Source of the DNA: Geosiphon pyriformis uo1
Lineage: Eukaryota > Fungi > Glomeromycota
NCBI GenBank assembly: GCA_016748015.1
Contig: JAAOMT010000468.1
Location: forward strand, 620,001-684,000
Length of the DNA stretch: 64,000 nt
Reading direction: 5' to 3'
Shown: positions 16,057 to 30,971 of the stretch, one piece after another
How positions within the stretch are numbered: position 1 is the stretch's first letter
Layout: the number at the start of each line of letters is the position of its first letter
Translations under genes and position numbers: made by a program
Notes under the pieces: model-generated
What the model saw: only the letters and a program-made list of their open reading frames with translations
Databases searched by the model: none
Told to the model about the DNA's origin: nothing

Positions 16057-17029
16057 TTAAGCTGTGAATTGTTAAATAACCTTAATAAGTAAGCATTAAA
16101 AAAAATTAAAAAAAGGGATATTAATTAAAGATTTACACTTACATTTGGGGGCTTCTTTTAAGGAGATAGCAGCCTCCTCGCCCATAGCACTAATGATAGT
16201 GACCAAAAGTTCTTTACCTTAAAAACAAAGAATAGATTAAAGTGTAAAAAAATATCTGTATATTTGATGAGTAAGATTCCTTCTTTTAAATTACCTTCAC
16301 CAAATTCCGATTCAAGCTTGTCGCCCAATTCACCTTCGGGAACACGAACATCGTCTTTAGTAGTCCCATCACTGGTCATCAAACTCAAGAATCCGTCATC
16401 AATATTCAAAAGTGAATATTCAGTACCTAAAAAATTTATTAGTATTAATCCTTAATCCTTAAAAAAAACCACATCAGAATAAACTATTCTTACGCGAGAC
16501 ATTAGGGACATCCATATTATGAGTAGACGGGGAGATATCTGTAAAATAAAAATTTTTAGATTATAAAAAAGCATGGAAATCCTAGAAAAAAGTTTTGGAC
16601 CAATATTGAAATTGATCATGTGTGAGTCGAGCATATTTTCACCTTCGAGTTTCTTCCCAGTGAATATATCAATTCCGACAAGATGAACTTTCTAAAGTAA
16701 TACAAGTTATTAAAAAGGAAAATTAATATCAATAATTTTGTATATTTAGGTTTAAATTGCGTTAATGAAACCTAAGGAGATCTACCGCGTGCCCGTGTTT
16801 ACCAGTTTTACTGGTGCTCATTTCTACTATCTTGCACGGTCTACCCTTAAGAAGCACGTAGCCATTCTAATGACATGGTCATGATTAAAAAAAATTTCAA
16901 AGTAAAACATTATTAATGTGGGTCTTTGTGGAAAAAAAATACCTTTCTAAGAGCAGAGCACTGAACAGGGTAGGTGGCTGAGGCCCCGGACCCACCTTGC
17001 TCGAAATCGTTGTGTTGATCATCCTCCAT
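16057..17029 (-). CDS. TIF51: Translation factor eIF5A, multi-exon (final exon assignment tentative)
   Basis: [13 protein letters not shown], hypusination loop [34 protein letters not shown]. Confidence 0.96.
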
Positions 17030-17112
17030 AATTCGTGAAAAAAAAAGTATTTTACAGGTAAAAGTAAAGGATGAAATAAAAACGTCAAGAGTAGGGAAGA
17101 TGGGACGATTTG

Positions 17113-18840
17113 GGGGCCGATGAAAAGATTTGCATAATAATGCCTATCAATAAAAAAAAAATACTAATCAGTTGCTTAGTAATGCTTATCAGGTTCAAAA
17201 TCACAAGATAAATAACCCACCTTTTTCTCTTCCCTCTTTCCTGAACTAACTTTTCAAAATGCTGAAACCACTACCACTGCCACCTCTGCTACCAAGAAAG
17301 GTTAACTCTATACCCATATCTTTAGGACAAAGCAAAAAGAGGATCTTGAGCGACAAACAACTTCTCGCCCGATCTCTGACGAGCACAAACTCTTCCAGGA
17401 TGTTCTCGCCGCATGCAGGGAAGGAGAGCTGCTCGCTACTGAAGAGAACGCAGGAATAAAAGTACGCAAAGTAAAGGCAACAGCAGCCCGTGGCAAACCC
17501 CAGAAGACGGAAGGCATTCTCAACCGCACGTTACTAGCTAAGACGTATACCAACCACCTTCAAAAGCAGCTATTGAAGCGATGGATGGGGTTGGCGAGAT
17601 TTGCCATTAACACCGTGGTGGGATGGAGCAGAAGACGTCGCATCATTATGAAATAAGAGTATCACAGAAAATGGATGGATGAAACCTAGGACTTTTGAAC
17701 AAAAACATCTTTTTGATGATTCGGCTATTTAGGTGAAAGAAAATTTTGCAGAGCCATTGTCCCTCTTGGCATGCTCTTAAAAGGATGCTCCTGCCAACAT
17801 CATAGATGAAGCGATTGATCAAGCATTAAATCTAATGCACAGCGACAACAAGGTGCATCATCATCTTTCTTTTCAATCTCGTAAGACACTGCATCACACC
17901 ATAACAATTCGTGCTCAGAATTTTGCCGAGTCACCTTGGAGTCGCTTCTATGTATCTTAAATTTACACTTCAGCAATATACATCGACAAAAGGTAAAGAT
18001 AATAAATTTTTAAATTGTTTTATATCATTATTTATGTCGTCTTTATGTCATTTTTTATTCTTTATCTTATTCTTTATTTTTAAGGATAAACATATACTAT
18101 CGCCTCTCCGCTTCGTAAAAATAACAAGTGGCCCAATCCACACAAGATCACATGTGATGGAAAACTTATTCTTGACAAACCAACAAGTGAAAGTTTACCT
18201 GGGTCTACGAGATACAAATACAAGTCCGCGAAACCCAAGTGGATGATTCGATTCGTGCAGTCCCCATAGATCTTGGCAATTGCACTCCATTTACATGTTA
18301 TTCCTCAACAAAAGGTATAGGCAAAATAGGCTCTTGTGGCATCTGTCGTATTGCAAATTTATAAATGGGCTTTGCTCAAAGAAAGCTAAAGCCAGAAAAT
18401 TAGAAAGGCGATTGGGTGCATGTGTCAAAAGATTTTACACTTGCAGACAGAAATACACAGAAAGGCAGTCGCATTTTCCACTCACAAATTTGATGCTATT
18501 GTTAATCGAAAAAGAAAACAGTTGGAAAAAGATCCCATGCTGCGGGCACTATCAATTTCGTCAACGTCTGATCGCCAAGGCAGAATTGGGAATCCGAATT
18601 ATTATCCAAAATGAGGTCTATAACTCTAAAACTCGTAGCTGGTGTGGAAATATCCAAAGAATCGGAGGATCTGAGGTGTACAGCCCCCGGAATTGTAAGC
18701 TTGTTATGGATAGAGATGAAAATGGCGCTTGGAGGATCTTTCTCCGGGCATTGCTTGATGGAGCCTTGGTGTTACAGTGATGTGAGAAATAATACCAATA
18801 CTTCGTATTGCCTATCATTGATTTGTTACAATCCATCCGG
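17113..18840 (+). mobile_element. Non-autonomous IS607-like Fanzor2/TnpB element (relic)
   Basis: Carries a TnpB-like pseudogene; left end has 21-bp-phased direct repeats after a GGGGG run; right end has the same motif and terminates in CCGG; no TnpA serine recombinase seen. Boundaries inferred. Confidence 0.7.
17259..18780 (+). pseudogene. Fanzor2 / IS607-type TnpB RNA-guided nuclease, frameshifted
   Basis: HTH_OrfB-like KTYTNHLQKQLLKRWMGLARFAINTVV, LKDAPANIIDEAIDQAL, RuvC-I AVPIDLG, LQTEIHRKAVAF, HYQFRQRLIAKAE, NEVYNSKTRSWCG, IGGSEVY, MDRDENGAWRIFLRAL; several frameshifts/stops. Confidence 0.88.
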
Positions 18841-18868
18841 CTTGTAAACTATTTACGATAGCGTGAAT
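18781..18868 (+). ncRNA. Candidate omegaRNA 3' scaffold plus flanking guide segment
   Basis: Position immediately after the Fanzor stop codon; hairpins CAATAC-TTC-GTATTG, TTACAA..TTGTAA, ATTTACG-ATAG-CGTGAAT; no expression evidence. Confidence 0.35.
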
Positions 18869-19048
18869 TGCAGCATTCATAATCTTATTTAATCAAAAAT
18901 AAAACCAAAAATTCAACAATCTATCGTATGATGGCTGCGGACGAAGATATTTCCAAGTTATAATTTAAATAATAATTTTGCAAATTTTTTATTGAATCGA
19001 GATTACGTTGGGTTTATTAACTTTTTATAAACATTTCAATGATCAATT

Positions 19049-19584
19049 TCAGTTTATAAATTGGCTCTTAGCTTTTTTTCACCTTTTTCTCGTTAGTTTC
19101 CGGGGACTGAATGCCAACAATTTGTTCAATAGTACCCTTTTTAATAAAATAAAAAAACAAAGTATAATAATTAAGATCTTTTTATCATTTTCCCCATTTT
19201 CATTGATAAAAAAATCTTTAAATCTTTACCGTTACAGCTTCAACTACAGAATACATCAAATTAGTAGCATTTTCGATTATAAGGGTACAATCATTATTGG
19301 CTTCAGGAGGATCTTTTTCATCTATTGAGCTATTGTCACTATCCGGTGGTCTAACTGTTTAATTGAACAGATATGACTTCAACTTAATTTATTACGCAAC
19401 TATCAGTCAGATTAACTATTTAAGTATCACCTCATTACTCACCACCAGTAGGATTCGATCCGATTCCCGCTAAAGCTGTTGAACCTTTAGTTGTAATCCA
19501 AGCTTTATTATCTTCGTTATTTTTTAATCGCAAATCATCCTGCTGTGCTTCAGTAATGAGATCTGTAACACTTTTCGAAGACAT
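19049..19584 (-). CDS. Small three-exon hypothetical protein (~117 aa)
   Basis: ATG 19584, GTGAGT and GTAAAG donors, AG acceptors, open spliced frame MSSKSVTDLITEAQQ...VRPPDSD...GTIEQIVG...KSQFIN*. Confidence 0.6.
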
Positions 19585-22500
19585 TTTAAAGTAAAAAGAT
19601 TTTTAATTTGAATTTGATCAAAGGGTTGGAAGCCTTTTTAATTCGATTACTTGTTTCAAATTTCACCTAATATGAAATTTTATTTGGGAATTCTCCTTTT
19701 TATATTCTCCCTTTCTCTTTCTGATCATGCTGGAATCCAAAATTGAATTAACTAAATAAACACTTTTGACCTACATATCATGACGTTATGGTGATGAATG
19801 AGACTCAAATCTAACCTAGATTGATGTCAATTTGTCAATTATTCAATATGATATTGATCAAAAAATTTCATTATGATATCAGCCAAATAAAATAGGAATC
19901 GGGTAGTCACTGTAAAAGTTTCATTCTAGGTTATGTCTATTTCAGGTTTTTTATTAAAAGCTACTCATTATCCTGCTACAATCTCTAATAGTGCCAGGAT
20001 TTAGAACCTATGCCTTTATACATTCAATAATATTATTCTCAAAAAAATATTGAAATACATATAATATTATTTTTACATATTATCTGAAATTTTTATAATA
20101 AATATTATATTCTTAAGTTAATTTTTCATATTATTTCTATTTGAAAAAAATTATTATTCAAAAAAGTATTTTCATATTTTAAATTTTAGCTTGTTTAAAT
20201 ATATAATAAATAATTAAATAATTATTTTTATTAAAAATATATTTTTAAATAGTTTAATTAAAATAATATGTATATTTGTAAATAAATTTTATTGAAAAAT
20301 ATAAATCCATTTTTAAAATATATTTTATTTAATTATTGAATTTATAAAATTAATAAAAACATTATAATTTTAAAATGAATTTTAAAAGCTAAAAATTATA
20401 TATATATATAACTTGTATTAATATAATTATTTTATATATATTAATGCTATTTTAATTAATTAACATATTAATTAGATAATTAATTATATTAAAATTCTTA
20501 GCAATTATTTTTTAAATTTTATAAATAGTTTTAACAAAATAAATCAATAAAAAAGTGAGAATTAACAATAATAAATAATAATAATAATAAGTTTTATATT
20601 TGTTTTTTTAATAAATCTATACTATTCAAGTTTTTAAAATAAATATTAATTAAAAAATTGTAAAAAATTTTTTTTAGGTATTTTTATGATCATAATTAGA
20701 GCAAAAATAAAAAAATTGTAAATTCTTTATTTTTTAAAACAACTAATAGTACTTTTATTAATAATATATTTACAACTATAACAATACTATAAAAAATATT
20801 CTTTTTAAATAAAATAGTAATTAACCAGTCTTTTTTTAATTTAAAAACTTTTTTTATTTTTGATTAAAAGTTTTTTTTAAAGTTCTATTAAAAAAAACTT
20901 ATTAAAAGTAGTTTTAATATAATTTTTGTCTTTTTTAAAAGCTTTAAAGTATTTAATTAAAAACCAATAATTAAGTTGTTTTTTTTTTTGTTTTTTTTTT
21001 ACTGTTGTTTAAATAACCAAAAAAACCAAAACAACCAAAAAACAATCTTTTTAAATTTTTATTATATTTAATAACAACTTTTTTAAAGTATTAAAAATTA
21101 TTTTTTTTGGTATTTTTTAAAAAAAATCAATTTTTTTAATAATTTTAAATATGCTTGTTTTTTTAGTTTTTAATAAAATTAAATTTAATAAAAGTATTAA
21201 TAATTAATTAAAATTTACCAACTTTTAAATAAGCTGCTTTAAAAAAAAATACTAATATTTTTAAAAAAATTGTTAATATAAAATTAAGATTTAAATACTA
21301 ATATCTTTTTTATTGTTATATTAAGCTTTATTTATATAATTTATTATTGTTTTTTTATAAAGTTTTTTAATTAATCTAAAATTTATTATTATATTTAAAT
21401 TTAATATAATACTTTTATAATAATTATAAATTATTAAATACAAATAAAATTAAATAATAACATTATTTTTATTTTGTTTATTTATATTATTACAAGTAAT
21501 TTTTAAATATTTTTTATTTTTATTTAATTTTTTTATTCAATTAAATATTATGTTTAATATATTATTAAGTTTTTTTTTAATTTGATTTTATTAAGAACAT
21601 AATTAATTTGTTTACATATTATTTTATTTTAAATACCAAATAAATATATTTTAAATGAAAATAATTAATTTTACTTATTAATTAAAATATAAAAAATATT
21701 TTTTTATTTTTTTAAAATTATTTAATATTTTTTTAAATTTTTAATTTAGATAATAATTAAACTTTGCTTATAAATTAAATAAATTATTTAAAACTTGTAT
21801 TAATAATAATATACAATATTTAAATAAGTTTCGATTTTTTTATACCAAAATAATAATACTGAAAATTTATTATTATTATATTATCAATAATTATAAAACT
21901 TGATTAATTTTTTAGTTTAAAATTTTAATATTGTTAATAATAATAAGTTTAAAACTTTTTTATAATATTATTAAATAATAAAAATATTATATACAAATAT
22001 TATTAAAACAACTAAAAAATAAAAAACAAGAAAATTGAATAATTTTATTAATAAATACAAATATTAAATAATTATTTTAAGTAAAAAAAACTTTTTTTTT
22101 ATGTTTAAAATTTTTTAAAATACCAATTTAATATAAAAATTTTTCATTTTTCATTTTTTTTGGTTATTTTTTTTTCACTATTTTATAAAACACAAATCCT
22201 TTTATTATTACTTTAACAGCCACTATTAGTAACATAATATTTAAAAAAAAATCAGTTAAAAATATTGTTTTGAATTTAATAAGTAAAAATTTGATACAAA
22301 AACCCAAAATTTCAATTAACAAAATAAAATACTTAAATAATAAAGCAGATTTAAAGTTTAAATTACCTTTGTATAATATTAGTCAGCTTGAAAATATGAA
22401 TATTTTTTTGAATAATGTGATAAAAAACTTAGTTGTACATAATATTAGCTATAATATTAAGAATAAAAGTAATAAATCTTTAGATTTTTATACTAATACT

Positions 22501-23086
22501 CTAAAAACAAAAAAGTTCAAATCTGAAAAAGTGGTAGATTCTTTTTTTGGCTTTTGTAATTTTAGCTTTATTGATAATAATAATAATATCTTTAATGTAT
22601 TATTATTTTTGTTAATTAATTTTACTTTATATTTAAGTGTTCAAATCAAAGAAAAAAGAAGTTTTAACTTAGTTAAGTTATTTATACTAAATATTAATTT
22701 CTTAATTATATTTAACAAAATTTTTAATAATAAGCTTAAGTTTATAAAAAAAATTTTCTATAATGTTAATAATTTTAGAGAAGTGTTAATTTTTTTAAAA
22801 TTTTCAAAATATTATTAAAATATAATTTATGTTTGAATCTAGTTTTAAAACTACTAAGTAGTTAATTATAAAAAAAAATTTTTTAATTAATATTAATCTA
22901 AAAAAATTAACATTTAATTGGATTAAAAAATTATAGTTAAAAAAATTTCAGTAGATTTTTTCAAATTAGCAATTAAATTAATACTGTTTAAATTTGACAA
23001 TATTATTTTTATTAAAATACAGCTTATTAATTTTTGGCAGAAAGTTTTAATTAAATTTGAAAGTTTTAAAGTTGTTAACTTGATTA

Positions 23087-23367
23087 CTGATTTGGCTTCA
23101 AGGTTCTCTGCAGAGGTGGTTAGGTTACTTGACATCACTAATGCTTTAGGTGTTCATTTTGGTTTTCGCAAGTCTTGCATGTTCTTTTCAGGTATAGATG
23201 AATCGGTATTAGTTCATATAGCTGCGTAGTGTTGTTCTGATCGGCCTGAGTGGCTGGTCACGTGTAGAAAGTGCATGATTCACGCCTAGTTTAGATCAAT
23301 TCCTTGATGTATAGTACTAGGTAGTGTTTGGACCTCATTCGTTAAGCAATAAAAAAAAAAAAAAAAA
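23087..23367 (+). mobile_element. 5'-truncated LINE 3' end with poly(A) tail and 10-bp TSD
   Basis: TSD AACTTGATTA at 23077-23086 and 23368-23377; encodes LASRFSAEVVRLLDITNALGVHFGFRKSCMFFSGIDESVLVHIAA*; AATAAA/poly(A). Confidence 0.85.
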
Positions 23368-26300
23368 AACTTGATTATAGTTAAATAGTTAATTTTGTTA
23401 AGAAAAAATTTGATGTAAATTATCAAAGCTAATATTAATAAACATATATAGGATTTAAAAAACTACTATTATATTTTTTTATATATTTTACTAATAGACA
23501 CAACTATTCATAATTTTTTTAATTTAGTCTAATCTTATAATAGAAAAATATGTTTAATTTTTTGTAACTCTGTCTTTTACATATAAATATACTGTACTGT
23601 TATATGTTTTGTTATGGTTAAAAATATTATTATTTATTCAATTTTTGTCTTTAAAAATATTAATTTGGTTTAAACTGGTTTATTTTTTTCTAAATATGTC
23701 AAATATAAGAAATCTGGTTATGTTTTAGCGATTTATAATAATAATTCTCAACTATTTGGTTAAAATTCAATTTTTTTTAAAGTCAGATAAAAAGTATTTT
23801 GTTTTTATTTATACTAAAAAGCAGACTTTTATGTTTTATTAATAGAATAACATGAGTTTTTATAATAAGTGATAATTTAAAACATCTTTTTTTTAAATTA
23901 TCTTTTTGGTAAATATATTAATTAACAATTCCAAAGAAATTTTTATTAATTTGACTTTGGCTTCTTAATTAAATACTTTTAAGTACTTTTTGAAACTTTT
24001 ATTTGATTATATTATTAAAATATCTTACAAACTAAATGGTTTTTTTCTTTGCTATTATTAAATTGTATTGTAAAAACATCTGTTTTGGATGTTAATCTAG
24101 TATTAAATATGGCTATTAATAAGCTATTGTCTATTTTTTCTGTTTTATGTATTAATTTTGGTATCTTTCAAAACATATTTTTTAGTGAATCCAAAGTTTT
24201 AACTGCCAAAATTAGTGGTTTAAAAACTAATATAATGGTTTTAAAAAGTTTAATTACATCTATTATAGATAAATTAAAGTTTTTTAGTTTGAATAATAGC
24301 ATAGTATTCTTTTTTTTTCTAATAAATAGCTTAATTTATATATAATATTAAAAGAATAAATGTTTTTGTCAAACAAAATAATATTATTAAATAATATAAT
24401 AAGTTAAAAAATAATATTTTAATTGTTATTAAAACTAAGCGTTATTTTAGTATTAAATCTTAAATTGTAAATAAGTTTTTAGATATAAAAGTATTTATTT
24501 TTGGTTTGAATTTTGAGTATTTAAATGTTGATATTATTTTAATTGTAAATAAATATTTAGCCAAACATATTTCAAAAATTTTTAAAATTTTTAATAGGCT
24601 TTTGATATTCTATTTATTGTTTAAAACAAATAATCAGTTTTTGTGTTAAGATTATATACAAACATATTTTAGAAAAATGGTTAAACCAAACAGTTATTAT
24701 TAATTTTCTTATAATTTATATATATAATAAGAGTATTTTTGTTATTTTAGAAGATAATTTCAATAAAAATAGTATTAAATATAGTATTAAATTTAAAAAA
24801 TATATGGATTTAAGTTTAGTTAATTCTTTAATTAGTAGTTTATTTGTTAAATTTTCTACATAAAAAATTTAAAAAAAGTTAAAAAAACAATTAATTATAT
24901 TTTTATATTACTAAATTTGGTTAAAGTTTTTACTGACAGAAAAATTTCGAATATAAGTGATTTTTTTAACCCTAATTATCTTGCAGTTTCTGTTTTGATT
25001 AAATTAAATAATATTTTAAATGTATATTTAAGTATTTTTTACAAACAAATTAATAAAAACTAATAAAAATACAACTTTAAAAAAACTAATACATTTAAAT
25101 AGACTTTTTTTACAAATATTACATTGGCAAATATTACTGTATTTAGTAAATAATTTGAATATGTAAAAAAAAATTTAGATTTAGATATTATATAAAATAT
25201 TATTAAAAAAATTGTTAGTTTTTTGGCCAATAAACTCTTTTTTAAATTTTAGAACAAAAATTTTAATAGTATTTTCACTAAGATTTTATTTTGCTTTTAT
25301 AAATTAAATATTTAAGATTGTTTAAACTTTCTATTTAAGTATTAACAGTGAGTTAAATAACTTAATTATTTGTTGGTTGTTACTTAATAATTTATGAACA
25401 TATAATATTTAAGATTTTTTAGTATTAAGTATCAATCTTAATATAATCAAATATAAATTAACTAAAGTTAAAAAAATATATTGTGTGCTCAAATTAGTTA
25501 AATTTTAATAAGCTAAAGTTATAAAAATTTGTATTATTATTGATAAGAGAATAAAAAGTTTTAAAATTAATAAAAACCACACTATTAGGAATGTTTTAAA
25601 GCAATTTTTTTATAAAGTAGTTTTAAATTATTTAATAAATAGTAAAAATTTGGTGCTAAAGTCTAAAAAAATTAAGTTTTAAATGAATTCAATCATAGAG
25701 AAATAAATAAAAAAACACAAGATATTAAAAAATGTTTTAAGTATTTGGTATTAATAATATTTGTTTTTGGCTTATATAACTAATAATACTTTTTTTAAAG
25801 TTATAAATAAGATTAATCTTGATAAAATATTGGATATTGTTTTAGAGTTACTGAATAAAAAAGCTTTTGGTTTGTCTAAGATATCTAATAAACTTTAAAA
25901 ACATTGTAATTTTTCAGTTTTGGGTTTTTTACTGAATTTTTTTAATAGTTGTTTAACAAATAAGTTAGTTTTTTAGTCTTAAAAAGAAGTTTAAAAGTTA
26001 ATAATTCTTAAACTATATAAATAAAAAGATTCTAATTAATACAAAACTTATTGTATTAATTAAGACTACTTAAAAAATTTTTTTTAAAATCTTATCAAAC
26101 AAAATTTTTTTAATTTGCAATAAACATAATATTTTTTTTATAGAAACAACTTTTCAGTTTTAAAAAAAATAACTATGTAATCTTTAATTTTTGCTATTAG
26201 TTTAATAATAAAAAATATTCTTAAAAAAAATTATAAACTTTAATTGGTATTATAAAATATATATAAAACATATAATTTAGTAAACTAGATGTATTTAAAG

Positions 26301-28079
26301 AACAGTTTAATTTGTATTAAATATATAATAAATTTGTTAAGTTTTTTGGTAGTATTTACAATAGTTAAGTTAATCAAGTTATAACTGACTTTGACTTAAC
26401 AGATAGTTATTATGTACATAATAAATTGGATTATAATAAAGTGTTTTTTCTTTTTTTTAATATATTTTTTATGACTTTTTTCTGTGTAAAATTAAAAAAC
26501 AGAAAAATATGTACAAATATAAGATTAATTTTAAATTTGTGACTAAAGTAAGATATGTAAAGAATCAAGTTAATTTAACATCTTTTTTGGCTACTAATGT
26601 ATTTGTTGATAATACTATTTGAATTGGCAATAATTAAATTACAACTCACTATATTTTAAATATTAAAAATAAGTTTTTTCAAGTTAATAATATTTTAATT
26701 AATAATAATAAAACAATAATCATTCTGATTAATTATAAAATTACAAGTTTTTTTTGTTAATTAGTAGTTTGCTAATTTCAGTAACAAAAAAAAATTTATT
26801 AAAGCTTAGTTTGGTAAAAATTTATTTAAACATTAAATTTTTTGTTGACAAAGTTTTAAAAAAAACTATTTTTAATAAACAGTTTTTGTATTTAGTCTTA
26901 GCAATACTTCATTTTATTATTAGTTATAAAATTTAGTTTAATTTTATTTCTATTGGTATGTATAATAAATAAAACATCATAATTTGTAAGAGTTTAAATT
27001 TTGTTTATTTTTAAACTTTCTAAACAATATAATTTATTATTTTTTCTTATATGGCCTAAAAACTTTTAAGTAAGTACAAGCTAAAAACAAATTAATTTTT
27101 GTGTTAAGTTTTTTAAATATATGTAATATTCTGGATTATTTGTTTATTTATGGATTTTTTAATTTACAAGTTTTAAACTAATCTTTTTACTATCTTTTAT
27201 GCTATTTGGTCTGTTTCAAAGTTAGTTCTTTAAACAACTTTCTGGCTTGTGGTTTAAATTTTTTATAATTATAATTTATCTTTGGTTAATTTTTTATGTT
27301 TAGTTTTTTGCTTTTAAAATAAAACTCTAATGTTATTAGTTTTAAATAAATTTGTTTTTTTTAAGATGTTTTATTTACTTAAATAATTTGGTATTATTTT
27401 TGTTAAACAGTTGCATGATAAAAAAAGTGGTGTTTTTACTTAAAAAATTTTTAAATATTAAAAAAAACTAGATTTCTATGGTCTTGTTTCTGATTGGTTT
27501 AAATCTGCTATTAAGTTTTTGAATGGTTTGACTTTTTATTTTGTTATTTTATTTTTTGCTATTAGTTTTTAGTTTTTAAATATTTTTGGTTTGTATAAAT
27601 TTGATTTGATTTGTAACCAGCTATTAAATACTAATATAATCTGTTTTTTTGTTTATATTAATAGTTTTCTAAATAATTTAAGTATTATTAATATAAAAAT
27701 TAGTATTATAGTTTTTTTTAAGAATATAAATTTAAGTTTAGATGTTAAGATTTTAGGATTAGTTTTCTTTATTATGACTAAATTATAAACTATTGTACTT
27801 ATCTTGAAATGTGTTCTTTTTTTATATATAATAGATTTGTTTTTTGACAGCCAAGTAATACTGAATATATATTATTCAAAATTGGTTTTAGTTTCTCCAA
27901 ATTTTTATAATTATTGTTAAATTAAGCATCAATATATTGTAAATATTATTAGGAATAAAAATTTAAGCATTAATTAATATAAGATTAAAGACTATTTAAG
28001 TATTCTGGATAATAAAAAAGCTAATATTTTGATTAGTACTACTTTGTTTTTAAATGTAGTATTTTCAGTTTATATATAA

Positions 28080-29072
28080 TATTATTAGAAATGTTTTTTT
28101 TCTTGATATTATTAATGTTATTTTGTTGCTAATTATATTATTAATAAAAGTTAGTAAATTTTTAATAAACCAATTTTTTTTTTAAAGTATCTTTTTATAT
28201 TTTGAATTGTATTATATTGTTGAACTTATAATAAAATGGCCAATTTTGTGCCAATTACTTATATAGTTATTTTGTAGTAAAAATTAATTTTTTTACAAGA
28301 AAATTTTGTCAGTAAGTTTTTTAAAAATATGTGTAGTTATTTTGCTATAAAAATCAACTTTTCTATAAAAAATTATAATTGTAAACTATTCTATGATATA
28401 AAAAAAAATAAACCAAAAAAAAAAAAAAAACATGTTTTTAAGAGAGTTGTTTTAGATTTAAGTCTGAAAATTACTAATAATTACTAAAATTAGTAGCTAA
28501 TTAATTTTAATTATTAGTATAAAATAGTTAATTTCAAACAAAAATAAATAAAAATTTTTATGTTTTTTAAAGTGAGTTTTATTGAAATTAATTTGTAAAA
28601 GAATAATTTTAACTAAGCTATTGAATAAAAAGTACTAATTTAAATTAATATAAGACTAAAAAATATATTTTCTCAAAAAAAGAAGCTTTTTTTTATACAA
28701 TTTATTATAGTACTATTTTATAATCTATTATTTTTTTTTTAATTTTTTAATAAACTAAAAATACATTTTATTAAACTACAAATTATTTGTATAAATTATA
28801 GATTATTTTATTGAACTGTTAACTATTTTAGTAAATTATTAAATATTTTAGTGAATTTTTAATATTATATAGTTTAATGTATTACATAATTTTATTATTA
28901 CAATTTGATTATATTTGTGATTTATATAAATTAGGTTATTAATTAAATAATAATTCAAATAATTTAATAAAATAATAAGTAATAAATTAAAATAATAATA
29001 TATACTAATTAAGAATAAAAATTAAAAGACTAATTTTATGCCAAATAATATTTCAAATTTTGGCTAATAACA
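28080..29072 (-). mobile_element. Eroded solo LTR nested in the LINE relic
   Basis: Homologous to LTR 62830-63809 (e.g. ATGGCCAATT.TGTGCCA and AGAAGCTTTT blocks); eroded termini TATTATTAG...CTAATAACA. Confidence 0.7.
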
Positions 29073-30971
29073 ATAAAAATATTTTATTAAAATTGTTTTA
29101 AAAAATATAAGATGATTTGTTTATGAAGTTTTTTAAATAATTTATCATGTTTATTAAAAAATTAGATCTGAAATTCATGTTTTAGAAAACAGTTTGCTTA
29201 AAAATATAAACTGGATTAAATTATTGCTTATATAACACTATAATTTTTATATATTAACTGAATTTATGAGCAAATTTATTGCTGAATTGTATTTTTATTT
29301 TATAAAAATTTTATATTACAAACTACTAATGGCTATTTATAAGCATCTGTATAATAAATATTACTATAGTATTTTATGTTTGTTTTATAAAGATGTTAAA
29401 TTTTTGGATTATGTTTTTTCTTGCAGATTAAATAATAAAGCTTACAAAAAACTATTAAATAGTTATATAACTGTTTAGAAAATGTTTTTTAACTTGTTTA
29501 AAATCTATTTATGTATTTTACAGCTGTTTTTTTGTGCTTATTTGATATTGTAATATACTTAATTTTGTGTAAAAGATTTGTTTTTAAGAATTAATTTCAG
29601 AAATTTTTCTTGGTTTTTAAAAATGCTAAAGTTGTTGGCTATAAAATATAGATTTTATACATAGTTTTGAATTAATTTATAAGAATAATATTTGGCTTGT
29701 TTATTCTAAGTATTAGATTTTATTAGAAAAAAATAGTTTAATTTTATATAATAGAACTCTTTCTATAAATATTACTGGTTTGTTATCTGTTTTGTTTTGT
29801 GATATAATTAAGCTGCTTAGAATTACTAAAGCTTTTAGTATTAGTTTTGGTATATATAAATTGTGTTTTTTTTTCAAGTATTAAAAACATGGTTTTTGTA
29901 TATGTAAATATATAATATTGTTCTAATTGGTCTAAGTAGCTGATTATATGTAGTTAAATACATAATTTATACTTAGTTTAAATTACTTAGTTTAATGTAT
30001 TATACTAAACAGTATTTGAATTTTACTTATTAAACATAAAAAAAAATTATTATAATTAATATCTATAATTTATTTAAAAACAAGTTATTATTAATAAAAT
30101 ATTATATTATTAATATTATACAATATTTTGAAAATACATAAGTATATATTAAATAAATAAATTTTAGCATTATTAAAAAGTGTATTTAGATTTTTAAATT
30201 CTTAAACTTTTACAAAAATTATATAAAAAAGTTTTATTAATAATTATATAACATTTTAAGTTTAATAAGATATTATTTATAAAATAATTATAGTTATTCT
30301 TTTTAATACATTTTATAAGAAATAATTTTTTTATTTAAATATTTTTTAAAATTTTTAAAATTATTTGTTTTAAAAATATAAGAAACAATTTTTTCTTTTT
30401 AAGCTTTCTTTAAAATGCTTTTAATAATGTTGTAATTTCTTGGTTTCATAATAAATTTGATGTAAATTAGTTTTATATTTATATATTTTTATATTTATAT
30501 AATCTTATATTAATTATAATTAAATTTAATATTAGTTATATTTTAACATAATATTAATTTAAACTGTAATTTACATTAATTTATATACAATAGTTGTAAA
30601 TAATCAAAAATGTTTTAGTTAAATGAATCATATCAGCCTTTTATTTATGTTATATAATAAAATGTTGTTTTGTTATAACATATACCAAATTTAAATATAT
30701 AAAATATTATTTGTTTGTTTGAATTATTTTTATTGTTTAATTGAACATATAAATTTCTTAATTCAATAATTTATTATTTTATATTAAAACATATGATATT
30801 TGTTAAAATAATTAAAAATATTAAGTTTTATTCTAATAACATTCCTCTTTGACGCGTCAAATTAGTTACCTATAACTATATTGTACGACAATCCGATGAT
30901 CGTAATCCTCAAATAAAAAGGTATTGAAAAAAACTTTTAAGTCATTTTTGGTATTATCAAATATCTTCAAA

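Follow-up and report, generated by a model that had tools for sequence, protein, structure and literature searches.

A probable decayed IS607-type transposon with a Fanzor2 gene, subterminal direct repeats and CCG junctions in the genome of Geosiphon pyriformis

The locus described here is a candidate transposon of the IS607 type in a 64,000-nucleotide stretch of the genome of the fungus Geosiphon pyriformis (the window, whose positions are used throughout), and the closest described systems provide the frame in which it is read. The left end (LE) of IS1535 carries four 9-bp direct repeats, helically phased and located 20-60 bp from the end, and fewer are found at its right end (RE). The assembly of a paired-end complex by TnpA dimers on these subterminal sites was shown biochemically, and in other members of the IS607 family the repeats are not always in phase (PMC6188088). 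The IS607 crossover takes place at a dinucleotide common to both ends and to the target, and the first right-flanking base is fixed and lies in the guide-RNA scaffold (PMC10711439). In ISXfa1, the target-adjacent motif (TAM) of TnpB is GGG and overlaps the crossover motif (PMC10711439). NlovFz2, the Fanzor2 of Naegleria lovaniensis, has a measured 5′-CCG TAM (Saito et al. 2023, PMC10432273). The mimivirus ISvMimi with its L79 Fanzor2 (ApmFz2) is also a unit of an IS607-type TnpA and a Fanzor2 (PMC10530073, PMC3627910).

Positions 17117-18839 on the plus strand are, with high probability, one decayed copy of an IS607-type DNA transposon which once multiplied in the Geosiphon genome. In the active element, a serine-recombinase TnpA was encoded first and, after it and in the same orientation, a Fanzor2/TnpB RNA-guided nuclease. 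This kind of element is already known, and the window copy is an ordinary and long-dead example of it. Like IS1535/IS607 (Chen et al. 2018, PMC6188088), the family places tnpA before the TnpB-type gene, is free of inverted repeats at its termini (TIRs) and of duplications of the target site (TSDs), carries multiple 9-bp subterminal direct repeats in roughly helical phasing within the first 20-75 bp and fewer at the right, and has an identical short sequence at both junctions. Unlike them, it resides in a eukaryote, its nuclease, a Fanzor2, has an N-terminal extension and contains a spliceosomal intron, its junction is CCG and not GG, and tnpA seems to begin at the boundary or very close to it. 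The features of the locus are the following.

17112-17116, plus strand: G-run in the host flank, private to this insertion; flanks unrelated and not G-rich in 19-30 other left ends
17117-17119, plus strand: left junction CCG, probable crossover and target sequence and predicted TAM, from paralogue junctions and the NlovFz2 TAM
17120-17215, plus strand: LE with five TGCYTAnYA units (17131-17139, 17141-17149, 17162-17170, 17173-17181 and 17183-17191), conserved at 0.7-0.9 per column in 19 copies
17121-17440, plus strand: tnpA relic, from a hidden Markov model (HMM) of TnpA; NF033518 and PF00239 match in other copies
17259-17261, plus strand: conserved ATG of the Fanzor2 frame (+1 relative to tnpA), likely start of a nuclease with an N-terminal extension; present in 7/7 copies
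17259-18780, plus strand: Fanzor2 pseudogene, from PF07282, 9b0l and P0009
17993-18084, plus strand: spliceosomal intron of 92 nt, GT..AG, from contigs of runs X2 and X3
18781-18839, plus strand: RE, with repeats at 18799-18807 (TACTTCGTA here, TGCTTAGTA in the family) and 18809-18817 and the terminus ...ACAATCCATCCG, from conservation
18837-18839, plus strand: right junction CCG, the last bases of the element; terminal G in 23/29
18840, plus strand: first right-flanking base, G here; purine in 18/23

The extent of the element is given by its paralogues. The genome searched is an AT-rich assembly of 128 Mb in 792 contigs, and the query was window 16900-19000. With 40 of 237 candidates scored, 99 pieces match this query at 65-85% identity; the family thus has at least 40 scored copies, and every copy inspected is broken and contains stops. 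For the ends, 19-30 left ends and 33 right ends of paralogues were aligned, and per-column conservation was taken from 19 left ends. In both pairwise and multiple alignments, homology starts at 17117-17120 (...CCG followed by ATGAAAAGATTTGC...), single starts ranging from 17116 to 17135, and stops at 18839/18840 (...GTTACAATCCATCCG). Column conservation is 0.3-0.45 in the left flank and 0.6-0.9 from G-A-T-G onward. An earlier note, made from the letters of this DNA alone, had placed the element at 17113-18840; its right limit stands, and its start is off by a few bases. Two copies, L047 (G000:C783:1002-4161) and L048 (G000:C649:448571-450857), are identical over the compared left-end segment and over a stretch through tnpA; as one of them lies at a contig start, the pair has the look of an assembly duplicate and not of a recent transposition.

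A repeat search of the window gave no inverted repeat pairing the two ends of the element, and the flanks of 7 copies with both ends, compared by eye, have nothing in common beyond CCG, so that no TSD is apparent. The element therefore conforms to the IS607 type, which lacks both TIRs and TSDs. It has to be considered here that the Fanzor2 gene might have been captured by a cut-and-paste transposon with TIRs and TSDs, the tnpA-like pieces being unrelated neighbours. Such captures are described for mollusc and Chloropicon Fanzor2 elements (PMC10711439), and the termini do show a weak inverted match of 5 of 6 positions (CCGATG / CATCCG). No longer inverted repeat accompanies this match, however, no duplication of the target is seen in the 7 copies, and in most copies the common boundaries enclose the tnpA relic, which without exception stands between Fanzor2 and the left end. 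Capture of this kind is so improbable that it can hardly be maintained for this family.

The recombinase gene is recognizable across the family. In the genome, the NF033518 model of IS607 transposases finds 37 sequences, each fragmentary or interrupted by stops, so that the search for an IS607 TnpA which the earlier note had advised does recover relics; in other copies, many of these come immediately after the same left end. Family copies reach 80.9 bits with this model (decayed; cut-off 110), and PF00239 (Resolvase) is over its cut-off in three of the NF033518-matching relics. The TnpA HMM built in the analysis matches 15/19 copies, from about nt 120-250 of the element, with 111 bits on L048. 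Three intact relatives serve for comparison, a Logan contig of 2 kb (L061), an ENA contig that is virus-like (L067), and L068/L069; the IS607 transposase model gives their tnpA frames 168 (L067), 144 (L068) and 135 bits (L061), each above its cut-off of 110. A serine-recombinase TnpA with the YxRVSS catalytic domain is thus a property of the family, while the window holds only a relic of it. A further relic of IS607 type, L063 (G000:C667:97862-98338, minus strand), is unrelated at the DNA level and has a TnpA with a recognizable MerR-type helix-turn-helix (HTH) (NF033518 positions 3-165); it suggests that the genome contains a second lineage of IS607.

In the window copy, the TnpA HMM matches at model positions 55-100 (11.3 bits, i-E 4.6e-4). 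The catalytic-serine motif has decayed to KKG*LYTHIFRTKQKEDLERQ (17294-17356), the C-terminal helix region is also left, and the start of the tnpA open reading frame (ORF) is uncertain. About 230 bp of the catalytic domain are deleted at 17370/17371 and a further 22 bp are lost downstream; more than 20 other copies keep the deleted stretch, holding 190-280 bp there versus 34 bp in the window. Because the breakpoints are private to the window copy, the deletion most simply arose after insertion, as decay, and the earlier suggestion that this element was mobilised in trans is without support, conceivable though it is for any copy. L003, the one other copy with a comparable deletion, is also without most of tnpA, but with breakpoints that differ from those of the window copy; a non-autonomous subfamily as the meaning of the deletion was ruled out for this reason. 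With its stops, its frameshifts and this private deletion of about 230 bp, the window copy is dead.

The second gene is a Fanzor2 pseudogene with many stops and frameshifts. Its last open piece, 18280-18780, contains the zinc ribbon and the final RuvC motif (PF07282, E 9.7e-12), and its best match among the Protein Data Bank (PDB) structures is 9b0l, the mimivirus L79 TnpB-like protein (E 2.6e-8, the match covering the zinc ribbon and the last RuvC motif); ISvMimi is therefore the system with the structure that is closest by sequence among those solved. An exhaustive HMMER search gave 1587 relatives. One of them, P0009, is an intact protein of 647 aa which is 62% identical over the C-terminal stretch, passes NF040570 (guided_TnpB) and also matches NF038280 (IS607_TnpB), below the cut-off. 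By these matches (PF07282, 9b0l and P0009), the gene has a TnpB core, with its closest kin among Fanzor2/IS607 TnpB. A close relative also occurs in L062, a 1160-bp contig of JGI metagenome 3300066541, with 67-82% DNA identity over the aligned pieces; it holds open Fanzor2 pieces (the protein P0003 is 68% identical) and, close to where the window copy has its intron, two called genes are separated by a gap. From L062, intact members of the family may exist in other Glomeromycota-like organisms.

The repeats at the ends are visible in the window itself. Three 11-mers, AATGCCTATCA (17139), AATACTAATCA (17160) and AATGCTTATCA (17181), start 21 bp apart, the core TGCCTATCA recurs on the same strand at 18809-18817, and GGGGG stands at 17112-17116 and CCGG at 18837-18840, all as the earlier note had read them. 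An independent repeat search recovers a 12-mer family, TAATGCCTATCA, TAATGCTTATCA and TATTGCCTATCA, at 17138, 17180 and 18806. In its total, the motif is not over-represented, as TGCYTAKYA is found 7 times in the window against 5.0 expected; four of the seven lie inside the two ends of the 1.7-kb element, all on the plus strand, and three of these fall within 51 bp. The motifs sit at matching places in about 19 independent left ends and in 33 right ends of diverged paralogues, and this conservation across paralogues is the best argument which the sequences offer that the repeats are not due to chance.

Compared across copies, the repeat unit is a 9-bp direct repeat, TGCYTAnYA. Five units fall in bp 15-75 counted from the left end, and two more lie 23-41 bp inside the right end. 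The left end of the family reads GATTTGCTTAATAATGCCTATCAATAAAAATACTAATCAGTTGCTTAGTAATGCTTATCAGG, and the starts of its five 9-mers are spaced by 10/16/11/10 bp. In the window, the first 9-mer (17131-17139) is mutated to TGCATAATA, and the three 11-mers correspond to the second, third and fifth units. The phasing of exactly 21 bp, which had been taken as a design of the element, does not extend to the family: between the second and third 9-mers the family interval is 16 bp, and the window has 21 bp because of five extra A's, private to its copy, where the window has AT, ten A's and TAC and other copies have ATAAAAATAC. At the right end, the two units are 10 bp apart (TGCTTAGTA-T-TGCCTATTA in the family) and are followed by 22 bp to the terminus. 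The right end does not code, and in 11-33 copies no other stretch of the 3′ region is as well conserved. Direct repeats are therefore present in a subterminal position at both ends, in the same orientation and conserved across copies, as is characteristic of IS607; the paralogue alignments support the proposal of an IS607-like left end whose repeats recur at the right. Because this anatomy and conservation match the architecture of IS1535, the repeats are read as putative subterminal binding sites of TnpA.

A different origin of the left repeats is conceivable, in which they are a by-product of coding and not binding sites: the left end would encode the N-terminal HTH of TnpA from an ATG at 17121, and a short internal duplication (LLNNAYQ / LLSNAYQ, in one frame) would have given the repeated DNA. 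The ATG directly follows the left CCG, and between the boundary and the codon of the catalytic serine there are about 190 nt, the length that an HTH with a linker requires, relatives having about 65 residues before the serine. In addition, L012, which is short of 23 nt between the repeats, gives a gapless alignment to HMM positions 12-87 that starts at the boundary, and what the frame across the third repeat (MLIRFKIAKINTPPFS) encodes is similar to the relatives' recognition helix and wing. The score of the HTH alone is weak, however: L012 has 5.5 bits versus a best value of 6.3 among 1710 shuffled controls, and all other copies are near zero. The frame contains TAATAA in nearly all copies, and the same two-repeat unit stands in direct orientation in the non-coding right end, 20-40 bp past the Fanzor2 stop, where coding cannot explain it. 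A purely coding origin is accordingly held to be unlikely. The coding and binding-site readings may also be compatible, with sites lying within the 5′ coding region; because the right-end repeats are non-coding, an HTH encoded at the left would not conflict with TnpA binding. A MerR-like HTH is seen in the relatives L067, L068 and L061 (partial) and in the subfamily copy L064, whereas in the subfamily of the window copy L012 alone aligns to it, at the marginal score given above.

The junctions of the element share a trinucleotide. CCG precedes ATGAAAAG in 6 copies, and CTG, TCG, CCA or CCT, each one step from CCG, do so in 6 more. CCG also closes the element on the right, where the terminal G is kept in 23/29 alignable right ends; four of the six right ends without it read CA, as CpG decay would give. 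The base after the right CCG is G in 9 copies, A in 9, T in 3 and C in 2, which makes it a purine in 18 of 23. In the place of the IS607 target sequence, both junctions thus have an identical trinucleotide, CCG, which is not GG on the coding strand. By analogy with IS607, the crossover probably occurs at a dinucleotide inside CCG, either CC or CG. CCG is also the predicted target and TAM of the Fanzor2, because both junctions are CCG and because, in the ISXfa1 model, the TAM overlaps the crossover motif. The prediction matches the TAM of NlovFz2, to date the only one of that kind to have been measured for a Fanzor2.

The earlier note had favoured another arrangement, with a start at about 17113, recombination at the G-run and a (T)GGG TAM as in ISXfa1. 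For ISXfa1 TnpB, a GGG TAM has been measured, and IS607 prefers (G)GG as its target (PMC10711439, PMC6188088), and the window does have GGGGG just upstream of its boundary and a G after the right end. Nevertheless, no other copy has a G-rich left flank, and the run at 17112-17116 is host DNA private to the window insertion, the flanks of 19-30 other left ends being unrelated. The base before the left CCG is A in 8/12 copies and G in 2/12, column conservation rises only at C-G-A-T-G, and the sequence common to both junctions is CCG. A G-run junction with a (T)GGG TAM is consequently regarded as very improbable.

On the reading preferred here, with CCG at both junctions, the transposition of the active element would proceed as follows. 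By analogy with IS1535, TnpA dimers would assemble a paired-end complex on the subterminal repeats, and recombination would take place at the dinucleotide inside the CCG of both junctions. Since the crossover would fall inside CCG, excision would leave a single CCG between the left and the right flank. The element's own Fanzor2 would then read CCG as its TAM and cut the emptied sites, directed by a guide RNA whose transcription would run from the right end on into the flank; the right end is expected to form the 3′ part of the omega-RNA scaffold. The empty site expected at this locus is ...TTTGGGGG-CCG-GCTTGTAAAC..., in place of the direct joining of ...GATTTGGG to CTTGTAAAC... that had been put forward before.

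ISXfa1 (Yoon et al. 2023, PMC10711439) is the source of the model used here for the crossover, the fixed right base and the overlapping TAM, and it differs in its TAM, GGG versus CCG in the window family. The likeness to NlovFz2 consists in the Fanzor2 clade, a disordered N-terminal extension and a 5′-CCG TAM equal to the window junction; unlike NlovFz2, the dead window copy is not to be expected to have activity.

Several observations weigh against this interpretation. The whole first 100 bp of the element are about equally conserved in the 19 left ends, and the motifs are no clearer than their spacers. The 5′ coding region of tnpA may extend over the repeats, and coding constraint could then add to the conservation of the repeats. 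The canonical IS607 crossover is GG and the measured ISXfa1 TAM is GGG, whereas CCG is found here on the coding strand. No empty site that would fix the junction to the base was found among paralogous flanks or in three public runs of the same organism: the flanks 16880-17116 and 18841-19080 are single-copy in the genome, and the contigs of the three runs, which are weak evidence on this point, contain no joint skipping the element. The predicted guide-RNA region folds no better than its shuffles over 18640-18840 (z = -1.1) and has no Rfam match, 16900-19100 giving chance-level hits only.

In the relatives, the two genes of the element may overlap. In three intact relatives, the Fanzor2 frame is open across the whole of tnpA in the +1 frame (L061:1-705, L067:2991-3758 and L068:2994-3698), and stretches of 251, 231 and 216 tnpA codons are without a stop in this frame in the three relatives. 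When tnpA was shuffled among synonymous codons, a stop-free Fanzor frame occurred in 0.47%, 0.025% and 5.0% of trials (p = 0.0047, 0.00025 and 0.050). The Fanzor ATG lies 10 nt after the tnpA ATG in L067 and 7 nt after it in L068. In the family of the window, the Fanzor-frame ATG at 17259 (AAAATGC) is invariant in 7/7 aligned copies, with a mean column identity of 56% around it, and the translated N-terminal extension of other copies matches P0009 residues 19-219. ISvMimi differs in this respect, as its tnpA and Fanzor are described as two ORFs, whereas the Fanzor frame of the window clade is open across tnpA. It can be proposed, tentatively and with less than an even chance, that the start of the nuclease gene lies within that of tnpA or next to it, and that the gene is read in +1 across the recombinase gene; the left repeats would then serve as TnpA sites, as tnpA 5′ coding sequence and as the Fanzor2 promoter at once, and bound TnpA could choose between recombinase and nuclease. 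The virus-like relatives L067 and L068 are single copies with no informative repeats at their ends, and their boundaries and junction motifs cannot be read.

The window copy alone is one dead copy of a known transposon type, and its use is descriptive. The more than 30 aligned ends, on the other hand, give a base-level picture of the ends of a fungal IS607/Fanzor2 family, comprising the repeat unit, its spacing, CCG and the purine flank. Should intact relatives be studied, these ends name the DNA for TnpA binding assays and the TAM and guide boundary for nuclease assays. The dual coding of tnpA and Fanzor2 is the more interesting lead, as it concerns the way in which eukaryotes and giant viruses express a bacterial element of two genes.

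The dead copy is still transcribed and spliced, because contigs of runs X2 and X3 cover the relic with an intron removed. This rests on taking the two runs, annotated as 'RNA? (probably DNA)' (X2) and 'DNA?' (X3), as RNA-derived, which was done solely from the GT..AG joints in two neighbouring minus-strand genes. The contigs cover the relic from 17213 or 17248 to 18482, with starts downstream of the left repeats, which would fit a promoter role of these repeats, and join 17989 to 18082, by which the 92-nt GT..AG intron 17993-18084 of the Fanzor2 relic is removed. An X3 contig, 18687-18873, crosses the right boundary; the contigs give neither strand nor ends.

The two neighbouring genes flank the element on either side. 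A minus-strand transcript at 16786-17054 has a contig word depth above 1000 in both X2 and X3 and a 76-nt intron at 16867-16942 (CT..AC on the plus strand); it ends about 60 bp from the left boundary, which places the element just upstream of an apparently strongly expressed gene. The second spliced gene lies at 18991-19300, also on the minus strand, with a 93-nt intron at about 19136-19228. Farther along the window, 20001-30000 has a G+C content of 9-18% in 2-kb windows and adjoins DNA of 33-37% G+C.

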